A stretch of 64,000 nucleotides of DNA, taken from the NCBI GenBank assembly GCA_020536535.1, contig JAHLWZ010000672.1, positions 1-64,000 of the forward strand, in the 5' to 3' direction. The notes under the pieces were generated by a model. That model was not told where the DNA came from. It made no database searches and worked only from the letters and a program-made list of their open reading frames with translations. Of the stretch, positions 14,645 to 26,555 are shown in pieces; the first letter of the stretch is position 1; every line of letters begins with the position of its first letter. The position numbers were made by a program, and so were the translations under genes. This stretch comes from Pelomyxa schiedti (lineage: Eukaryota > Protista > Evosea).

Positions 14645-17600
14645 CAGATAAAGATAGACAGGGAGAGCTTGCTTTGCTTGGCGAGGTGCGGTTCTGTGCG
14701 CGAGCCGCACCTCGCCATCTCGTCAGGTTGTCGTGTGCGCCGAACAACTATTATGTTGTTTGTGTATTGGCGTTCTCCACACTCAAGAATCCGATGCACT
14801 TCGAATACGTACTCCAAGTTAGCCCCAACGTTGTACTACGCAACAGAAAACAAACAGAGTAAAAAAAACATGGGGAAGGAAAAACGAGACTTTGGTGGTA
14901 TTAGAAGTACCGTTGTAGACAAATGGTACAACAAACGAGCGTGAAATTGTTGGTTCGTGTCGTGTTTTAGGGGTTTGGTTGTTGTGTTTTTTTGTTTTGT
15001 TTTGTTTTTTATTTGTTTGTATTGAGTCTGTTCCCCGGCCAGAAACTAGCAACTGTACGTTAAGAAAACAGGCACAGGATTAGAAAATAAGATAGATACG
15101 GGGAAGATCTCTAAGTCTAAGTCAAAGTCAAAGTCTATGTACGAGGTACGGGAGCGGTGCCGACTGTGCCCTCGTATGCAGTGATGTCACTGCAGCAGAA
15201 GGAAACCCAACGGGCGTTGCCAATGGGCGAAGTTTGATCGTTCGGTGAACATCGATGTTTGTCTCCAAATGGCCGTAGTCGTGTTTGGACAACGTGCGTA
15301 GTGGTACACGCAGGCAAATCGTAATGTCAATATGTCATTCATGCCACAATTTTGATTGGTCCAACAAGCAAACAAATCAATGGAGAAGGGATCTGCGTCC
15401 TGTGGTGGCGATGTGTCGCGGGTTTGGTACGCTCCGTTGGATTGCGGTGTTGGAGAAAAGGAACGAAGAAAAGTTTAGAGATCTACTGAAACCGAGGCTT
15501 CGAAGCCAAGACTGTCAGAAAAGTGTCTAAAAATAAATGCCATGAGGATTTCTGATTCCACTGCCACTCTCTCCCTCTTTTTCTCCCACATGGCAATAGT
15601 GCTCAACCACAGCAGAATTTTCCACTCAAGGTCTCAACCTCGGGGAACGGGGCGGGCGTGTGGTGAAAGTGCTTTCATCACAACAAATACCGCTGCTTGT
15701 CTGGTGGTGTCAATGACATTCGTGCGACTTGGTAATTCTACAGTCACATCCAACTCCCACTCTACGTTTGGTGGTTACCTTCTCTGACCCTCCTCCAAGC
15801 CACATTCATCCACTGAGAAGTTTTAGTGACGGTGTGGGAAGCGACACTCTCACCAAAGAGAATGAGCCCGCAGAAAAAACCAGACCAGGAATGAGTTGAT
15901 TTATCTCGAGAACGGTTATTTGCGGCATCAGTTCAAAGGTATGCATATGGATTGTCTAATCCTTAGTGGTATTAATACTCATTCTCTTGGAGGACCTGTG
16001 GTAATTTTTGCCTGAACATCGAGTACTGCATCCATCCTTGGCTATCTTTTCTTTCATGCACGTTCGCATCAATCCTTCATTATAGGATCAGAGACGATTA
16101 CCTGTCTACAAGTGTTTTTGCTTGTATGATACCAAAGGAAGGGAAAGGCATTACCTCTCTAGTGCCTTTGGAAGGTTCACTACTAAGTCTAATTTCCGAA
16201 CTGGGACAAGTTTGAGTGGCACCGCTTACACTTTTTCTTACCACTAATTTTTTGTTATGCAAGGCCAAAATTCTTCAGCACACTACTGAAGTGATTGATG
16301 AGCGCGAGGGTCACTTCTTCAAAGTTCCTCATCAACCGTTATGTTTCACTACTTAATAGTTCCTGACAAACCTGCAGTGTTTACTTTTGCACAGCAACAC
16401 GAGAATACATCACTTGAAAGCTATCGATTAACTTTGTAAAAAATGCAACAAACTGTAAGGAACCAGGATAGCCATCAGGAAAAAATGTGGGCCGCAGTTG
16501 CGTCGCGGCGGCACTTCATCAGCACCTCCCACACCCCTCCTCACTTGAACAACAAACAAAAAAATTGATTTAGGCCAATGTTTGTTTTGTTACTTGTTCG
16601 AAGTTTTTTGTCGAGGGAGAAAAAATTTTCCCCTTTAGAAAGGCGTCCACACCCCCTGAGGCACAACTCTCGGGTTGTGCCTGTGTTGTGGGGATTAATG
16701 GCTTGTTGAGGTGAATTCTTGATGGATGCATGAGGACTGCTTTGCTGTGGTTATTGCAGCAAGGACTGCTGTGGTTGCATTTGCTGGGAACCGAGGAGTA
16801 TTGGGTGATCGACTCTGTTTTGGGCTCTGTGGTTGATTTGCTCTTCTTAATAACCATGGGAATGGCTTTGTGTACGGGGCACCTGTTGTATCGCGTGAGT
16901 GAATCTGTTCCAGGGAGAGTGATAGTCACACACTTCCAAATGCATTGAACAACAGCCGGAGCGGTGCCGCGTCCATCGTAGTATGCAAGAACACTGTCAC
17001 CAACTTGGAGGTCTTTCATTGGGCACTGCTGTCCAGCTGATGACATCAGAATTGTGGCATTCGGCCCAAAGCAAACAAAATGATCCCGGACATACTTTGA
17101 AATGAATATGTAAGTCAACAAAAACCAAAAAAAAAAAAAAAAGTAAAGTAAACCTGTTCATGTTGAATTTCAGCCGTCGTAATTCCGAGTCTCTTTGTTG
17201 TTACGCGGATGTGAAGTGGTGACGCTTCAATGAAGTGAAAGAAATTACCCAAAACCTGCGCCCTGGTCATCTCAGGATAAACACACATGAGCATTTTCCA
17301 TATTCGGAGGTGGCGTGGAGGTGTAGTTCTGGAATCGGGGCGAATCTGTGTAAAAATGCAATGAGTGAATGTTGAAAGAGGCCAACAAAACTGCACACAT
17401 CGGAAATTGGAAGGTGGTATTTACGGATAAGCCACTCGGCACATTTAGCCTTTCCACTTAGAATCAAGGAGTTCAGTGGGGTGTTTTCTAAAAAAATGTG
17501 TTCTACTGATCTCACCTGATGTGCACTCAAGTGAAATTTCTGAAGGAGCCACTTGACAACTTTTCCAGAATTAGCTGAAGCAGCCATTTTCAAGCCTTTT

Positions 17601-18576
17601 GCAACGTCTTCTGAAGATAAACTGCAATGCGAAAAAAGGAGCTTTGCCTATGAAATATCCCGCAGCAAGCAGTATGCCAGACATCATTTATAGTGACTGG
17701 AACTGTGAATTTTTTCAGCAAAGCCGACGCAGCCTTGGTGTGCTGACGATGTATTCCGCATCTTTGAAATGCTTGATTCAAGGTTTTTTCACTGATGTTG
17801 ATTAATGTGGAACGGGAAAGGAACCACTGGAGACCACGCAGACAGCGACAGTAAGACTCCGAGATTTTCTTCAAGGTTGAATCAGCCATGCCGGGGGTTG
17901 TGTTGACATGATCCATCACGTGGAATGTCCCATCCAACCACTCTGCAATTGATATGTTGTTATGGCCCAGAGACTCCACAAGGCACTGGAGAATGTATTT
18001 TGTTGCAAGTGGCATGGTTCTTGGGAACAGGCTCCTCACCACTGGCACGCTATTCGCGCATGCTGCAATGAATGTCTCAGGGGTGACAGGTCCAATGCTG
18101 ACACTAAAGTTTGTCAACAACCACTCAACGAGTTCGTCATCGGTTGAAATCTAACAGGCCCGAGAGAAGTCTTTCTGAGTCAGTTGGATGGACAAGTTAC
18201 CTAAATGCTCTTGGACTGAAGATATTGCCGAGAGATCCCGAATGGCCTTCCACTGTAAATGTCTTCTTGATCCACTGGCACCCTTCTTCCAATTCTGGTG
18301 GTGAATGCCGAATGAACTGATGCAAAATGTCATAGGAATATCTCTGACGGCATCACTACCGACGCTGAACCATTCAGTGCAAAGCTTCAGAAGTTCCAAA
18401 CTTGGGGTGTCAAAGAAGTCGACGATGTTACGGGGGAGCCATCCACGTCTGTACTGTACTGTTGATGCTGCCTTGCAAGCACCAACAGCACCAGTTGAAT
18501 ATGCCAGCCACTTCACAACATCAGCATGTCCTTTATTCAGTGCAACTTCAAATGGATCAACCAGCTCCCAGGGCTC
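14645..18576. repeat. Segmental duplication, copy A (runs into N-gap)
   Basis: Colinear high-identity match to ~19529-24075 over both coding and non-coding sequence. Confidence 0.95.
16570..18576 (-). pseudogene. Degenerate copy of the ankyrin-like/Hint gene
   Basis: Frameshifts near 18350, 18198 and 17660. TCG->TAG at 18151-18153. ~20-bp deletion removing the ITPD codons at ~16810. ~0.5-kb deletion of the Hint C-terminal half at ~16660. Confidence 0.9.
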
Positions 18577-19528: not shown

Positions 19529-22500
19529 ACAGATAGACAGGGAGAGCTTGCTTTGCTTTGCTTGGCAAGGTGCGGTTATGTGCGCGAGCAGCACCTCGCC
19601 ATCTCGTCATCTCGTAAGGTTGTAGTGTGCGCCGAACAGCCGTTACGCTGTTTGTGTATTGGCGATTCTCCCCATAGACAAACACTCAAGATACGATGTT
19701 CTATGAATACGTTACTCAGAGTTGCAACCAACGTGGTACTACGCAACAACAAAAAACAGAGTTAAAAAAAACATGGGGAAAAACGGGACTTTGGTAGTAT
19801 TAAAAATACCATTGTAGACAAATGGTACCACAAACAAGCGTGAAATTGTTGGTTCGTGTCGTGTTTTCGGGGTTTGGTTGTTGTGTTTTTTTTTTGTTTT
19901 GTTTTGTTTTGTTTGTTTTGTTTTTTATTTGCTTGTATCGAGTCTTTTCCCCGGAGTCTTTTCCCTGGCCAGAAAATAGCAACTGTACGTTAAGAAAACA
20001 GGCACAGGATTAGAAAAAAAAGGTAGCACAGGGGAAGATCTCTAAGTCTAAGTCTATGTACGAGGTACGTGAGCGGTGCGAACTGTGTCCTCGTATGCAG
20101 CGATGTCACTGCAGCAGAAGGAAACCCAACTGGCGTTGCCAATGGGCGAAGTTTGATCGTTCCGTTAACATCGGTTTTTTTCTCCAAATGGCCGTAGTCG
20201 TGCTTGGACACCATGCGTAGAGGAAAACGCAGGCAAATCGTAATGTCAATATGTCATTCATGCCACAATTTTGATTTGTCCAACAAGCAAACGAAACAAA
20301 CAAATCAAGGGAGAAGGGATCTGAGTCCTGCGGTGGCGATGTGTCGCGGGTTTGGGGTACGCTCTGTTGGTTTGTGGTTGGGTGCGGTTGGAGAAAAGGA
20401 ACGAAAAGGAAAGGAAGGAAACTGTAAAAATCTCCTGCAACCGAGGCTTCGAAGCCAAGACAGTAAGAAGAGTGTCTAAAAATAAATGCTGTGAGGATTT
20501 CTGATTCCACTCTCACTCTCTCCCTCTTTTTCTCCCACATCGCTGCCAATGGGGCTCAACCACAGTAGAATTTTCCACTCAAGGTACCAACCTGAGGGAA
20601 ACCAAACAAGCGTTTGATGAAAGTGCCAACACACAAACACTGCTTGTCTTGGTGTTTCTGACATTCGGGTGACTTGGTAATTCTACAGTCACATCCAACT
20701 CCACTCTACGTTTGAGAGGGTGGTTACCCTCTCAGACCCTCCAAGGGAGCCACATTCATCCACTGAGAAGTTTTAGTGAGTTGGGAGACGTTGTGGGAAG
20801 CGACACTCTCACCAAAGAGAATGAGCCCGCAGAAAAAACCGGACCAGGAATGAGTTGATTTATGTCGAGAACGCATCAGTTCAAAGGTATGCATATGGAT
20901 TGTCTGATCCTTAGTGGTATTAATACTCATTCTCTTGGAGGACTTGTGGTAATTTTTGCCTGAACATCGAGTAATACATCCATCATTGGCTATCTTTTCT
21001 TTCATGCACTTTCGCATCAATCCTTCATTATAGGATCAGTACCTGTCTACAAGTGTTTTTGCTTGTATGATACCAAGAAGGAAGGGGAAGGCATTACCTC
21101 TAGTGTCTTTGGAAGGTTCACCACTAAGTCTAATTTCCGGTTCCAAGTTTGAGTGGAACCGCTTACACTTTTTCTTACCACTAATTTTTTTGTTATTCAA
21201 GGCCAAAATTCTTCAGCACACTACTGAAGTGATTGATGAGCGAGAGGGCACTTCTTCAAAGTTCCTTATCAACCGTTATGTTTCACAACTTAATAGTCAC
21301 TGACAAACCTGCAGTGTTTACTTTTGTAACAGCAAAACGAGAATGCATCACTTGAAAGCTATCGCTTAACTTTGCAAAACATGCAACAAACTGTAAGGAG
21401 CCAGGATAACCATGAGGAAAGGATGTGTGGGCCGCAGTTGCGTTGCGGCGGCACTTCATCAGCACCTCCCACATCCCTCCTCGCTTGAACAACAAACAAA
21501 AAAATGATTTCGGCCAAAATCCCTTGTTTTTTTTTGTTACTCAAAGCTCAAAACTTTTTGCTCGGCGGAAAAAAAAAATTTCCTGTAGAAAGGCGTCCAC
21601 ATACCAACCAGTCAGGGAAAATCACTGCCCCCCACTCCTGAGGACTTGGATGGGGGAGGAGGTACGGTGCAGACGTAAGGGAAGCAGCAGTCCGAATGCA
21701 ACCAATGGACTACCCTGTCGGTGCCCCACCAGTCATCAGGGTAGCCTGGCACGCTCATCCCAAGGGTGCAGCATGCAACGCCAACTGGTTGTGGTGGAGA
21801 TATCCTTGTTTCTGGTTGTGATCCACACCAACTAGGCTCATAACCGGAATCGGCTGATGGAGAGTTGTTGTAGGGGGAGGAAGGGTCAGAACATGTTGCC
21901 ATTATGATGACGGCACCTCGCTGCTGCTGTTGTTGATTGCCGCTGTGATTGCTGCTCGTGGTCGCTGTTGATGTGGCAACACCACTACTGGGTGACAGGA
22001 ATTCGTTCTTTGCTGTTTGTTGTTGTTGGAGGTCTGGAATTTGAGGTTGCCAGAGGTGTTGTGGTTCCAGTACAAGGTTATAGACATATTCCACGTGAGT
22101 GATGTGTGGCTCACAAAGAGTGGTTGGGAGGCACCACTCTCGGGTTGTGCCGGTTTTGTGGGGAGTAATGGCTTGTTGAGGTGTATTCTTGATGGATGAA
22201 TGAGGACTGCTTTGCTGTGGTGATTGCAGCAAGGACTGCTGTGGTTGTATTTGCTGGGAACTGAGAAGGAGTATTGGGTGATCGGGCGTGATTTCGAGAA
22301 CCGACTCTGTTTTGGGCTCTGTGGGTGATTTGCTCTTCTTAATAACCATGGGAATGGCTTTGTGTACGGGGCACCTGTTGTATCGCGTGAGTGAATCTAT
22401 TCCAGGGAGAGTGACGGTCACACACTTCCAAATGCATTGAACAACAGCCGGAGCGGTGCCGCGTCCATCGTAGTATGCAAGGACACTGTCACCAACTCGG

Positions 22501-24075
22501 AGGTCTTTCATTGGGCACTGCTGTCCAGCTGATGACATCAGAATTGTGGCATTCGGCCCAAAGCAAACAAAATGATCCCGGACATACTTTGAAATGAATA
22601 GATATAAGTCAACAAAAACAAAAAAAAAAATCAAGTAAACCTGTTCGTGTTGGATTTCAGCCGCCGTAATTCCGAGCCTCTTTGTTGTCACGCGGATGTG
22701 AAGTGGTGACGCTTCAATGAAGTGAAAGAAATCACCCAAAGCCTGCGCTGTGGTCATCTCAGGATAAACACGCATGAGCATTTTCCATATTCGGAGGTGG
22801 CGTGGTGGTGTAGTTCTGGAATCGGGGCGAATCTGTGTAAAAATGCAATGAGTGGATGTTGAAAGAGACAACAAAAATGCACACATCGGAAATTGGAAGG
22901 CGGTATTTGCGGATAAGCCACTCCGCACATTTAGCCTTTCCACTTAGAATCAAGGAGTTCAGCGGGGTGTTTACTAAAGAAATGCGTTCTACTGATCTCA
23001 CCTGAAGTGCACTCAAGTGAAATTTCTGAATGAGCCACCTGACAACTTTTCCAGAATTAGTTGAATCAGCCATTTTCAAGCCTTTTGCGACGTCTTCTGA
23101 AGATAAACTGCAATGCGAAAAAAGTAGCTTTGCCTCTGAAATATCCCCGCAGCTAGCAGTATGCCAGACATCATTTATAGTGACTGGAACTGTGAATTTT
23201 TTCAGCAAAGCCGACGCAGCCTTGGTGTGCTGATGATGTATTCTGCATCTTTGAAATGCTTGATTCAAGGTTTGCTCACTGATGTTGATTAATGTGGCAC
23301 GGGAAAGGAACCACTGGAGACCACGCAGACAGCGACAGTACGACTCCGAGATTTTCTTCAATGTTGAATCAGCCATGCCGGGGGTTTCGTTGACATGATC
23401 CATCACGTGGAATGTCCCGTCCAACCACTCTGCAATTGATATGTTGCTATGGCCCAGAGACTCCACAAGGCACTTGAGAATGTGTTTTGTTGCAAGTGGC
23501 ATGGTTCTTGGGAACAGGCATCTCACCACTGCCACGCTATTCGCGCATGCCGCAATGAAAGTCTCAGGGGTGACAGGTCCAATGCTGCCACTGAAGTTTG
23601 TCAATAACCACTCAACGAGTTCGTCATCGGTTGAAATCGAACAGGCCCGAGAGAAGTCTTTCTGTGTCGGTTGGATGGACAAGTTGATTATCATCCACCT
23701 AAATGCTCTTGGACTGAAGATATTGTCGAGAGATCCCGAATAGCCTTCCACTGCAAATGTCTTCTTGATCCACTGGCACCCTTCTTCTAATTCTGGTGGG
23801 GAATGCCGAACGAACTGACGCAAAATGTCATAGGAATATCTCTGACGGGCATCACTGCTGACGCTGAACCATTCAGTGCAAAGCTTCAGAAGTTCCAAAC
23901 TTGGGGTGCCAAAGAAGTGGACGATGTTACGGGGGTGCCATCCACGTCTGTACCGTACTGTTGATGCTGCCTTGCAAGCACCAACAGCACCAGTTGAATA
24001 TGCCAGCCACTTCACAACATCAGCATGTCCTTTATTCAGTGCAACTTCAAATGGATCAACCAGCTCCCAGGGCTC
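19529..24075. repeat. Segmental duplication, copy B
   Basis: Matches 14645-18576. Confidence 0.95.
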
Positions 24076-24844
24076 AGTTCCCACGCCACCGTCAACGCTC
24101 CCTGACATCACCCACTTCACGGATTCGAGGTGCCCTCCCTTGCACGCACAATACAGCAGGCTCTGAACCCTCGTATCTCGCAAGTCATCAAACAGGTCGG
24201 GGTCATCGCAGGGCCACCTCAATAAGGCACAACTACGCCATGGTCTGTTGCCGCTATTCACAAGCTCCTGCGCCATTCCAACATGTCCCCCTGCCAATTC
24301 AAGTGAATCAAACATCAACAACAATCATCATCACACACACACAACACACAACACACACACAACACACACAAAGCCATCGAGGACCACACATACCAGCACA
24401 GAGGCCCTTGATCACAGCCGCGCACTCCCTCGTGTTGTTCCTCGTCGCCTTCGATCTCAGCACCCAGTCGATGCACCTCGCGCTGCCCGCCTCCCCCGCG
24501 CGCTCGAGCACAAAGTACCGCGACGCGTGCCTGCCGTCCCCGCACGAGCCGGGCACGATGCCGCCCGCGACGGCGCGGCAGGCGCGGGGCACCAGCGGGA
24601 ACAGCGCGTCGGCGAGGCCCAGCAGCCACGCGCACTCGCCCTCGGCCAGGAAGCACCGCTCGCGCGCGTCGTCCGCGTCGTAGGCGAGCACCAAGGGCGC
24701 GACGACGTGGTCCCACACCACGCGCGAGATCCGCAGCACGCGCCCCACGCAGGCGGCTCGCGTGCCCCCGCTGGCGACCTCGTCCCACTGCGCAGCGTGG
24801 CGTGGACGAGGCTCCTCCCCGCCTGCACGTCTGCTCATCATCAT
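21612..24844 (-). CDS. Ankyrin-repeat-like protein with C-terminal Vint-type Hint (autoprocessing) domain
   Basis: Inferred exons 24844-24394, 24290-22885, 22832-22641, 22586-22426, 22374-21612. Ankyrin-like CAGGHVGMAQEL, ACKGGHLESVKWV, ALNKGHADVVKWL. Hint block A CFGPNATILMSS..DLRVGDSV, block B ITPDHPI, EWCLP, VYNLVL, CCTLG..WGTDRV. Confidence 0.85.
24312..24370. repeat. (CA)-rich microsatellite in intron 1 of the ankyrin-Hint gene
   Basis: cacacacacacaacacacaacacacacacaacacacac. Confidence 0.8.
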
Positions 24845-25161: not shown

Positions 25162-26555
25162 TCAGCTCCACTCAAAAGTGCTGACAATCTCCTCCCGGGA
25201 AGAAAATGACTGCCTGGAGTCTCGAGTTCTTTCTTGCATCAAAGTGAGCTTCTCGAGTGCTGAACTCAGCACGTCTGTGCTGTATGCCGTTTTGTTCAAC
25301 CAAGGGTGCTGTTTTGGTGTTTTGATTTTTTGTTTTGGGGGCACCAAGCAGAACCGGTCAGACACGTTCTCGACGAGTTTTGGAGAATGGAAAATACCGC
25401 CAAAGCTTGGGAAGCACTCATTCGCGAATCACATCTCACAAGTAATTGGCGCACAAAGTCTCTGGCCTCGCTGGATACATGACACCAATCTTCATCCTCC
25501 ATCTGATAGTCACAATTCTGGATCCGCTCTAACAGTTCGGGAAGGCTGTCAGCATAGAACGGTGGGTAGCCGCATAATAAAATATAGGAGATAACCTAGA
25601 AAGGAAAAGGATGTTTGAGACATTACATTTCCAAAGTCAGCAAAGCCCACTTACTCCAATTGACCACATGTCAACTAGCGGACCGTAGCCAGTTCCATCC
25701 AGAACTTCTGGTGCCTTGAAGAGTAAATGTGGATTCCACTTTCCGCAGATAACTTACGACATAGGCGGGACTACCACAGGCAGTTGTAACCATGAGGGTT
25801 TCAGGAATGAGTCTGGCAAGACCAAAATCCGCTATACACACGTCAGTATCTGAGCGTTCTGATCGAAGCAAGATATTTTCGGGTTTCTAAAAGTAAAAAA
25901 AATGGGCTTCTGAATAAGTGGAAACAACAAACCAAGTCTCTATGAATGACGTTTCTTTGGTGAAGAAACAGTATTGCTTGTGTGACTTTTCTGACCACTT
26001 CCGCTGCGTCACATTCACTGTAGTATTTTCTTTCAACAATTCTTTCAAATAACTCACCCCCACGAGCAAGTTCCAGGACAATAAATACCTTTGGAAAGGT
26101 CACAAAGAAAACACTGGCAGTCTCTGGCCATACTTTTGTAGGGGATTCATACGAACGAATTAACTTGATTATCTGTGTGGCAAATGAACAAAAAAAGGTA
26201 CGAGAAACAAACCGAATGAACACACATTGGGATGTTGCATGGTCCCAAGTAGTTCCAGCTCTTTTTCCAACTTTGCAGTACAGCATGAACTTTTATGCAA
26301 CATTTTCACAGCTTTAAAGTGGTGAGGAAAAAAAAAATAAAAAATTGTTTGAAAATAAGTGCGAACACTACCATAACTTTCACCAGTGAATTTGTCTATA
26401 GCCCTGGCAACCACAGAGAATGTACCCCTGCCCAATTCCTCCATCACTTCATAACGGTCAAAAAACACCTCTGTCACATTCTTCGTGGGTCCTCTGTCCT
26501 CCTCCTGAACCACCCCTCCGTCATTATGGGATCCCTTCCCTTCTGTTGCTGCCAT
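25162..26555 (-). CDS. CaMK-family Ser/Thr protein kinase
   Basis: GRGTFS, AVK, HRDLKPEN, DFG, CGSPAYVAPE, DMWSIG, GYPPF and HPWL, distributed across short introns. Confidence 0.95.

Follow-up and report, generated by a model that had tools for sequence, protein, structure and literature searches.

A five-exon gene that joins an ankyrin-like repeat array to a Vint-type Hint domain lies on the minus strand of contig JAHLWZ010000672.1 of Pelomyxa schiedti, at 21612-24844 of the 64,000-nucleotide stretch analysed here (the window; contig C672 of an assembly of 52 Mb in 5337 contigs). It encodes 990 residues, and the five-exon translation is identical residue for residue to the public model KAH3759625.1 (P0001, Pelo_8523, "hypothetical protein"), which a protein search with the Hint exon retrieved as a 990-residue protein at 100% identity. 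The domain identity and architecture of KAH3759625.1 are, in our judgement, established almost to certainty. The gene is a real protein-coding gene with a cytosolic product, and ankyrin-Vint puts a known self-processing domain into a new combination, without being a new class. The preliminary description of this DNA had put the architecture forward as uncharacterised, and the literature and databases searched yielded no other protein with both ankyrin repeats and Vint. Vint itself is a described family, with a canonical architecture in which VWA and Vwaint domains lie upstream (Burglin 2008, PMC2362128); only VWA partners of Vint were found in the literature searched (PMC2362128). A Pfam scan of KAH3759625.1 matched only Ank families and Vint, with no match to VWA or Vwaint, and ankyrin-like repeats are thus the partner here, as had been proposed.

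P. schiedti is an anaerobic archamoeba known from single-cell genome data, with an average of 7.4 introns per gene, 98.4% of them GT-AG (PMC8887013). The exons were joined only for the identity comparison with KAH3759625.1; homology searches used single exons or KAH3759625.1. The gene is made up as follows.

24394..24844 (24844-24394), minus strand: exon 1, residues 1-150 plus 1 nt; GC-rich; N-terminal module of an ankyrin-like paralog family
24291..24393, minus strand: intron 1, 103 nt, GT..AG
22885..24290, minus strand: exon 2, residues 151-619; divergent ankyrin-like repeat array, 468 residues
22833..22884, minus strand: intron 2, 52 nt, GT..AG
22641..22832, minus strand: exon 3, residues 620-683; last conserved ankyrin-family module, WKMLMRVYPEMT...KRLGITAAEIQHEQ
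22587..22640, minus strand: intron 3, 54 nt, GT..AG, phase 0; boundary between the ankyrin part and the Vint cassette
22426..22586, minus strand: exon 4, residues 684-737; start of Vint with motif A and the catalytic cysteine (Cys1); predicted local distance difference test (pLDDT) score >90
22375..22425, minus strand: intron 4, 51 nt, GT..AG
21612..22374, minus strand: exon 5, residues 738-990 and the stop (21614-21612); rest of Vint, with three Q/S/T-rich loop inserts
21650..21780, minus strand: conserved C-terminal tail of Vint, GVACCTLGMSVPGYPDDWWGTDRVVHWLHS..FPYV; corresponds to the tail in the Tetrahymena Vint structure

The gene starts with ATGATGATG at 24844, and exon 1 joins exon 2 in frame. 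Most of intron 1 is occupied by a (TG)n microsatellite (~24309-24375). Intron 3 keeps the frame and has no stop, so that the open reading frame 21612-22943 also reads through unspliced. The preliminary description had joined the two modules by a 22641/22586 splice; this junction is canonical (GT..AG), keeps the frame and recurs in KAH3759625.1. Its continuous reading of the Hint exons has to be corrected: 22425-22375 is an overlooked intron, and VTVTLPGIDSLTRYNR is intron, not protein. Removal of this intron yields CIWKCPVHK, the sequence that all paralogs have at this place.

The C-terminal module has a Hint fold and belongs to the Vint subtype. The motifs by which it had first been recognized are all there, none more than a few bases from where it had been placed: VCFGPN at 22568-22551, with the Cys1 codon TGC at 22565-22563 exactly as described, MKDLRVGDSV at 22511-22482, the block B motif ITPDHP at 22292-22275, WCLP at 22136-22125, VYNLVL at 22085-22068, CCTLG at 21773-21759 and WGTDRV at 21728-21711. 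In KAH3759625.1 the catalytic residues are Cys691 (in VCFGPN) and the block T766-P-D-H769 (in ITPDHP). We aligned 17 cassette sequences (alignment A1, whose positions are used in the following). Thr83, Asp85, His86 and Pro87 of block B are invariant in all 17 sequences, and all 14 rows that cover the position of Cys1 have this residue. W134, N153 and G271 are likewise invariant, and C255, C256, L258, G259, P263, W270 and P286 of the tail nearly so. Homologues that lack the loop inserts match the Pfam Vint profile (PF14623, profile positions 1-144) with 54 (P0009), 50 (P0012), 58 (P0021) and 57 bits (P0022). At the block-G position stands GVACCTLG; ~50 residues follow before the end of the protein, with neither His-Asn nor another domain.

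The assignment to Vint is further supported by comparison with solved structures. The A1 profile matched the Vint structure of Tetrahymena thermophila (8r2c_A) with an E-value of 2.6e-13 (profile positions 11-163), hedgehog (1AT0/6TYY) at ~1e-5, and inteins and bacterial intein-like (BIL) domains at >0.1. The alignment with 8R2C takes in ITPKHP, ECICLG and LGSQAVV, the tail pairing with ECICLG...LGSQAVVEDL; the CxxLG / G(T/S) tail, given as CxTLG/GT in the preliminary description and regarded there as a mark of Vint, is thus common to the crystallised Tetrahymena protein. An AlphaFold2 model of residues 684-990, a check that the same description had proposed, adopts a Hint fold (mean pLDDT 73; core blocks mostly 84-95). 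Foldseek placed 8R2C first (E 3e-5, template modelling (TM) score 0.72 by target). With VIA-align, 8R2C superimposes with Z 19.5 and a root-mean-square deviation of 2.4 Å over 156 of 169 residues (model residues 5-299), ~8 Z above all others, of which BIL2 (Z 11.3), inteins (~10) and hedgehog (10.1) come next. The clusters nearest the query in the ESM Atlas are Vint clusters, labelled mostly Nucleocytoviricota. The claim of a Vint-subtype Hint domain with intact Cys1 and TxxH is therefore borne out by the motifs, by the scores of the paralogs (50-58 bits on PF14623) and by the model. Two other assignments were considered and rejected. An intein is ruled out by the lack of His-Asn and of a C-extein; the first of these had been noted at the outset, and the C-extein is missing as well. 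A Hog domain is ruled out by the Pfam Hint profile (PF01079; 17.1 bits, cut-off 29.7, profile positions 12-61 only) and by the structural scores (Z 10.1 vs 19.5).

Residues 1-683 correspond to a complete member of an ankyrin-like paralog family that is specific to this lineage. The "~670 aa of divergent ankyrin-like repeats" of the preliminary description hold up: Ank_2 is matched in KAH3759625.1 with 33-36 bits (cut-off 27.3; exon 2 alone, 36 bits), the model is all-helical and its best matches in the PDB are ankyrin arrays. By sequence only ~2 canonical repeats are found in residues 1-683, the rest being divergent. The AlphaFold2 model of exon 2 has a mean pLDDT of 85.6, and Foldseek matched it best to DARPin fusions, ankyrin-1 and AnkB (E 5e-4 to 2e-3, probability 1.00, global TM score ~0.3). 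Ank_2 is also matched by 20 of 21 aligned paralogs; beyond Ank, no Pfam match was found in the family. Within the same genome, exon 1 is matched at least 154 times, directly upstream of exon-2-like modules, and exon 2 at least 95 times (scored matches; 450 first-look candidates). Exon 3 corresponds by homology to the C-terminal part of paralogs L023-L026. The family numbers well over 150 copies genome-wide (366-450 first-look candidates; for example L023-L026 and L047-L066) and follows a common plan of a GC-rich exon-1 module, a ~470-residue repeat array and an end of the form WKMLLRVYPEMT...LGLTDADL...LW.HVWI*. Ordinary members end 10-15 codons past the exon-3 module (e.g. ...DSSLWTHVWIM*).

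In the window gene, intron 3 and the Vint exons stand in place of the usual last ~12 residues of this family. The closest Vint is that of P0002 (KAH3767300.1, Pelo_829), a protein consisting of a Ras GTPase, an F-box and a Vint domain, at 70% identity. In a maximum-likelihood tree, from which two partial rows (P0013 and P0019) were omitted, the window Vint is sister to that of P0002 (support 92/93), and both nest in a Pelomyxa clade made up otherwise of Ras-F-box-Vint proteins and of Vint proteins with an orphan N-terminus; algal Vint-only proteins (Rhodomonas, environmental sequences) fall outside it. Cys1 is preceded, at a distance of 7-8 codons, by a phase-0 acceptor AG both in the window gene (7 codons) and in ten paralog loci, and the position of the internal 51-nt intron is common to the window gene and P0002. 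The shared phase-0 intron, the sister relationship of the Vint domains and the replaced family tail together form a signature of exon shuffling, which points to the Vint exons having been borrowed from a Ras-F-box-Vint paralog at the conserved phase-0 intron. The 3' parts of the introns are also alike (TGTTGACTTATAT in the window gene vs TGTTAACTTATAT in P0002), a short match that is only suggestive of common origin.

The fusion is also preserved in a second, damaged copy nearby.

16463..18576, minus strand: decayed tandem partial copy, Pelo_8522 (P0005); ankyrin/Vint junction kept

Positions 16658-18576 are 93.4% identical to 22128-24075 over 1956 bp, and 16463-16651 matches the 3' flank of the intact gene. 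The copy lacks the 5' ~770 bp, has lost the C-terminal half of Vint to a ~526-bp deletion and contains in-frame stops. It is annotated as a 487-residue protein, with an N-terminus that looks artefactual. Since the junction is also present in this 93%-identical remnant, the fusion is older than the duplication. Among the ~60 Vint loci of the genome, ankyrin repeats upstream of Vint were found only in the window gene and its remnant. Ankyrin-Vint is a single, recent, lineage-specific fusion.

The thioester chemistry of Hint domains is established for hedgehog and inteins, and by homology with Hint domains we consider it moderately probable that the Vint domain of the window protein actively cleaves itself. 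In the folded protein, an N-to-S acyl shift would begin with the attack of the Cys691 thiol on the carbonyl of Val690, with Thr766 and His769 of block T-P-D-H assisting. A nucleophile, either water or a specific acceptor, would then resolve the thioester, and a ~690-residue ankyrin fragment would part from a ~300-residue Vint fragment at the predicted scissile bond Val690|Cys691. Splicing is not possible, as neither a C-terminal His-Asn nor a C-extein is present, and cleavage is the expected outcome. By inspection, the N-terminus has no signal peptide, so that processing would be cytosolic; Vint proteins have likewise been proposed to be intracellular (Burglin 2008, PMC2362128). No test of the effect of Vint on its N-terminal partner was found in the literature searched.

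Several points weigh against an active Vint in this protein. On PF14623, KAH3759625.1 scores 25.1 bits (E 1.8e-5), just under the cut-off of 27, because three long Q/S/T-rich inserts, modelled with pLDDT ~50, break up the domain; the precomputed database domain list does assign PF14623.12 to it. The Pfam comparison suggested in the preliminary description was thus positive for the ankyrin part, with Ank_2 over its cut-off, whereas KAH3759625.1 itself came close to the cut-off for Vint and fell short of that for Hint (17 bits). The residue preceding the scissile bond is valine, and a beta-branched residue at -1 tends to slow the first step in inteins. Only one intact copy of the young fusion is present and its duplicate has already decayed; hence, long-term retention is not demonstrated. 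To these points are added the limits of the transcript and substitution data described below.

It is rather unlikely that the Vint domain of this young chimera no longer cleaves or never did, and is a passive C-terminal appendage, a binding module or an incipient pseudogene. The protein is the sole intact Ank-Vint among >150 ankyrin-family members and ~60 Vint loci, and the truncated adjacent duplicate with its stops and the slightly low Pfam score would also suit a domain without activity. The intact copy itself, however, has 990 open codons and four canonical introns, it keeps Cys1, T-x-x-H and the conserved tail, and every core strand is modelled with confidence. Substitution rates speak on both sides. 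Between the Vint coding sequences of the window gene and P0002, the Nei-Gojobori ratio of nonsynonymous to synonymous rates (dN/dS) is 0.38 overall, at a dS of ~0.56. The long low-complexity inserts evolve nearly neutrally (omega 0.67), as might a decaying domain, whereas the structured core (174 codons) has a ratio of 0.21, where ~0.6 would be expected had one lineage been unconstrained since the split. The Vint core is therefore under purifying selection, although a pairwise dN/dS cannot place the constraint on the window lineage as opposed to the paralog lineage.

Contigs of a single-cell RNA library match the gene at 21637-21875, 21942-22092 and 22065-22370 with 0-1 mismatches (99-100% identity), and are assigned to the intact gene because most of 21637-22370 is missing from the remnant. 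The RNA run holds 16% of the sampled words. These contigs are a weak sign of transcription: they cover the last exon only and span no exon junction, a point that also favours a non-cleaving, decaying domain, and single-cell RNA libraries can carry DNA. The splicing pattern accordingly rests on the GT..AG ends, the reading frame, the comparison with paralogs and the public model. Joints seen in other runs have short sides (18-61 nt, most 21-33), look like paralog cross-matches and were discarded.

If self-cleavage by the window Vint does occur, a membrane lipid or another protein might receive the thioester as its defined acceptor, so that the ankyrin scaffold becomes covalently anchored. We regard this as doubtful. 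The preliminary description had raised ligation of the released ankyrin fragment to a lipid, small molecule or protein as a possibility. Its possible parallels, equally doubtful as applied here, are the cholesteroylation of hedgehog and the conjugation involving BIL and ubiquitin-like domains in Tetrahymena, and after 8R2C the structure most similar to the model is BIL2 of the BUBL locus (Z 11.3). The tail past the Hint core is among the best-conserved parts of the cassette, and 8R2C matches the model structurally as far as residue 299. Such conservation is equally explicable by folding or by regulation of cleavage, and it suggests a ligand-binding or regulatory role of the tail in the resolution of the thioester. 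The paper on 8R2C, from the Iwai and Wlodawer groups (FEBS Letters, 2024), reportedly proposes ligand-regulated cleavage. The cassette also occurs behind Ras GTPase-F-box modules and downstream of Kelch repeats, modules that normally need localisation or attachment to a partner; however, the general base of hedgehog (Asp46, numbering of PDB 6TYY) has no identified counterpart here.

That the fusion is an artefact of assembly (a chimera of single-cell amplification) or of gene prediction, and represents two separate genes, is highly improbable and was rejected: the genome does derive from single-cell data, and none of the listed contigs from the deposited runs covers the gene in full, but exon 3 and the start of Vint (exon 4) share one open frame (21612-22943) even unspliced, the same junction recurs in the 93%-identical remnant 5 kb away, which is not expected of an assembly chimera, a stand-alone Hint gene would have neither start codon context nor an upstream exon, and the public annotation gives the same model.

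The window protein can be compared with four groups of known or related proteins. It shares with VWA-Vwaint-Vint proteins Cys1 in motif A, the T-P-x-H-P of motif B, the C-x-x-L-G and G-(S/T) tail and the absence of His-Asn, and these proteins are also predicted to be intracellular. However, it has no VWA, Vwaint or RING/U-box domain, its partner being a 683-residue ankyrin-like array, and its cassette is one of a diverged subfamily (CCTLG..VPG.PD.WGT), with scores of 25-58 bits on PF14623, vs 95-138 for the canonical Pelomyxa copies. The three low-complexity loop inserts also set it apart from the canonical proteins. With the Ras-F-box-Vint paralogs (P0002) it has in common a 70% identical cassette, two intron positions and the loop inserts; these paralogs, themselves uncharacterised, carry N-terminal Ras and F-box domains instead of ankyrin-like repeats. 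Hedgehog/Hog proteins (PDB 1AT0, 6TYY) have the same Hint fold, Cys1 and T-P-x-H, and cleave without splicing through a thioester, as is predicted here; Hog domains also follow varied N-terminal domains (PMC2362128). Unlike hedgehog, the window protein has no signal peptide and is thus not secreted, and by sequence its tail has no sterol-recognition region. Inteins and BIL domains, including BIL2 of Tetrahymena BUBL (PDB 6Y75), share the Hint fold, an N-terminal cysteine and block B (Z 10-11), whereas the window Vint has no C-terminal His-Asn, +1 nucleophile or C-extein, and the sequence match to them is insignificant (E >0.1).

The window gene, therefore, places the Vint cassette on a wholly different cargo, and the paralogs show the route, exon shuffling 7 codons before the catalytic cysteine. 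Taken alone, it is one young fusion with predicted activity only. The genome survey proposed in the preliminary description did uncover other N-terminal partners bearing the cassette. The genome contains 53 matches to PF14623, 45 of them over the cut-off, and with a cassette search added the total reaches ~60 loci, fragments included, with at least five kinds of N-terminal partner. With ~60 Vint loci and several partners, the window gene is one instance of a wider phenomenon in Pelomyxa. A single genome thus offers a natural series of Vint domains with differing cargoes, which is useful for asking what Vint processing is for, and which is also a source from which self-cleaving modules tolerant of foreign N-terminal partners could be mined for protein engineering.

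The eight strongest loci are canonical (ADK-RING-)VWA-Vwaint-Vint genes, of which Pelomyxa has at least 8, with 95-138 bits on PF14623. The canonical Pelomyxa proteins (L031-L034 on contigs C185, C496, C579 and C1059; P0042-P0044) consist of an adenylate-kinase-like domain followed by RING, VWA, Vwaint and Vint, ~1055 residues in all. The public record calls two of them "Voltage-dependent calcium channel subunit alpha-2/delta-2", a misleading name that seems to have been carried over on account of the VWA domain. Kelch repeats were found 0.6-1.3 kb upstream on the same strand at 6 of the 10 mid-scoring Vint loci examined (L036, L037, L038, L040, L041 and L042, on contigs C590, C455, C563, C886, C427 and C239), and these six are probably Kelch-Vint fusion genes. 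At least ten Pelomyxa proteins combine a Ras-family GTPase, an F-box and Vint (P0002-P0004, P0007, P0009-P0012, P0015, P0025 and P0026), an architecture for which no description was found in the literature searched. P0007 keeps the F-box only; P0011 (844 residues) is without Pfam Vint in the precomputed list and runs beyond a truncated Vint into another region.

Outside Pelomyxa, the diverged Vint subfamily with the CCTLG..VPG.P..WGT tail is also found among cryptophytes and haptophytes (Rhodomonas, MMETSP; Pavlovales, CCMP2436) and in environmental sequences. These proteins (P0018, P0020-P0023 and P0027-P0038) are 160-470 residues long and have no other Pfam domain. Among proteins of 545-1732 residues, a query with the Vint region of P0001 retrieved three Pelomyxa proteins only. 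A query with a canonical Pelomyxa Vint region gave 8 matches, all RING/U-box-VWA-Vint, which leaves room for Ank-Vint proteins elsewhere.

A broader, speculative reading of this repertoire, which we think improbable, is that the Vint cassette could be a portable "C-terminal thioester generator", spread by exon shuffling onto adaptors and linking each of them to a lipid or protein acceptor. The adaptors would be the ankyrin array, Ras with F-box, Kelch, an orphan helical domain and RING-VWA, with ankyrin-Vint as the newest recruit, a scheme to which we give just as little weight. If such a generator did exist, it would amount to a system of conjugation or anchoring based on Hint domains, operating in parallel with prenylation or ubiquitin-like chemistry.

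Next to the ankyrin-Vint gene, at ~25300-26300 of the window on the same (minus) strand, lies an ordinary multi-exon gene whose product has protein-kinase motifs (HRDL, DFGLA) and an EF-hand-like tail.

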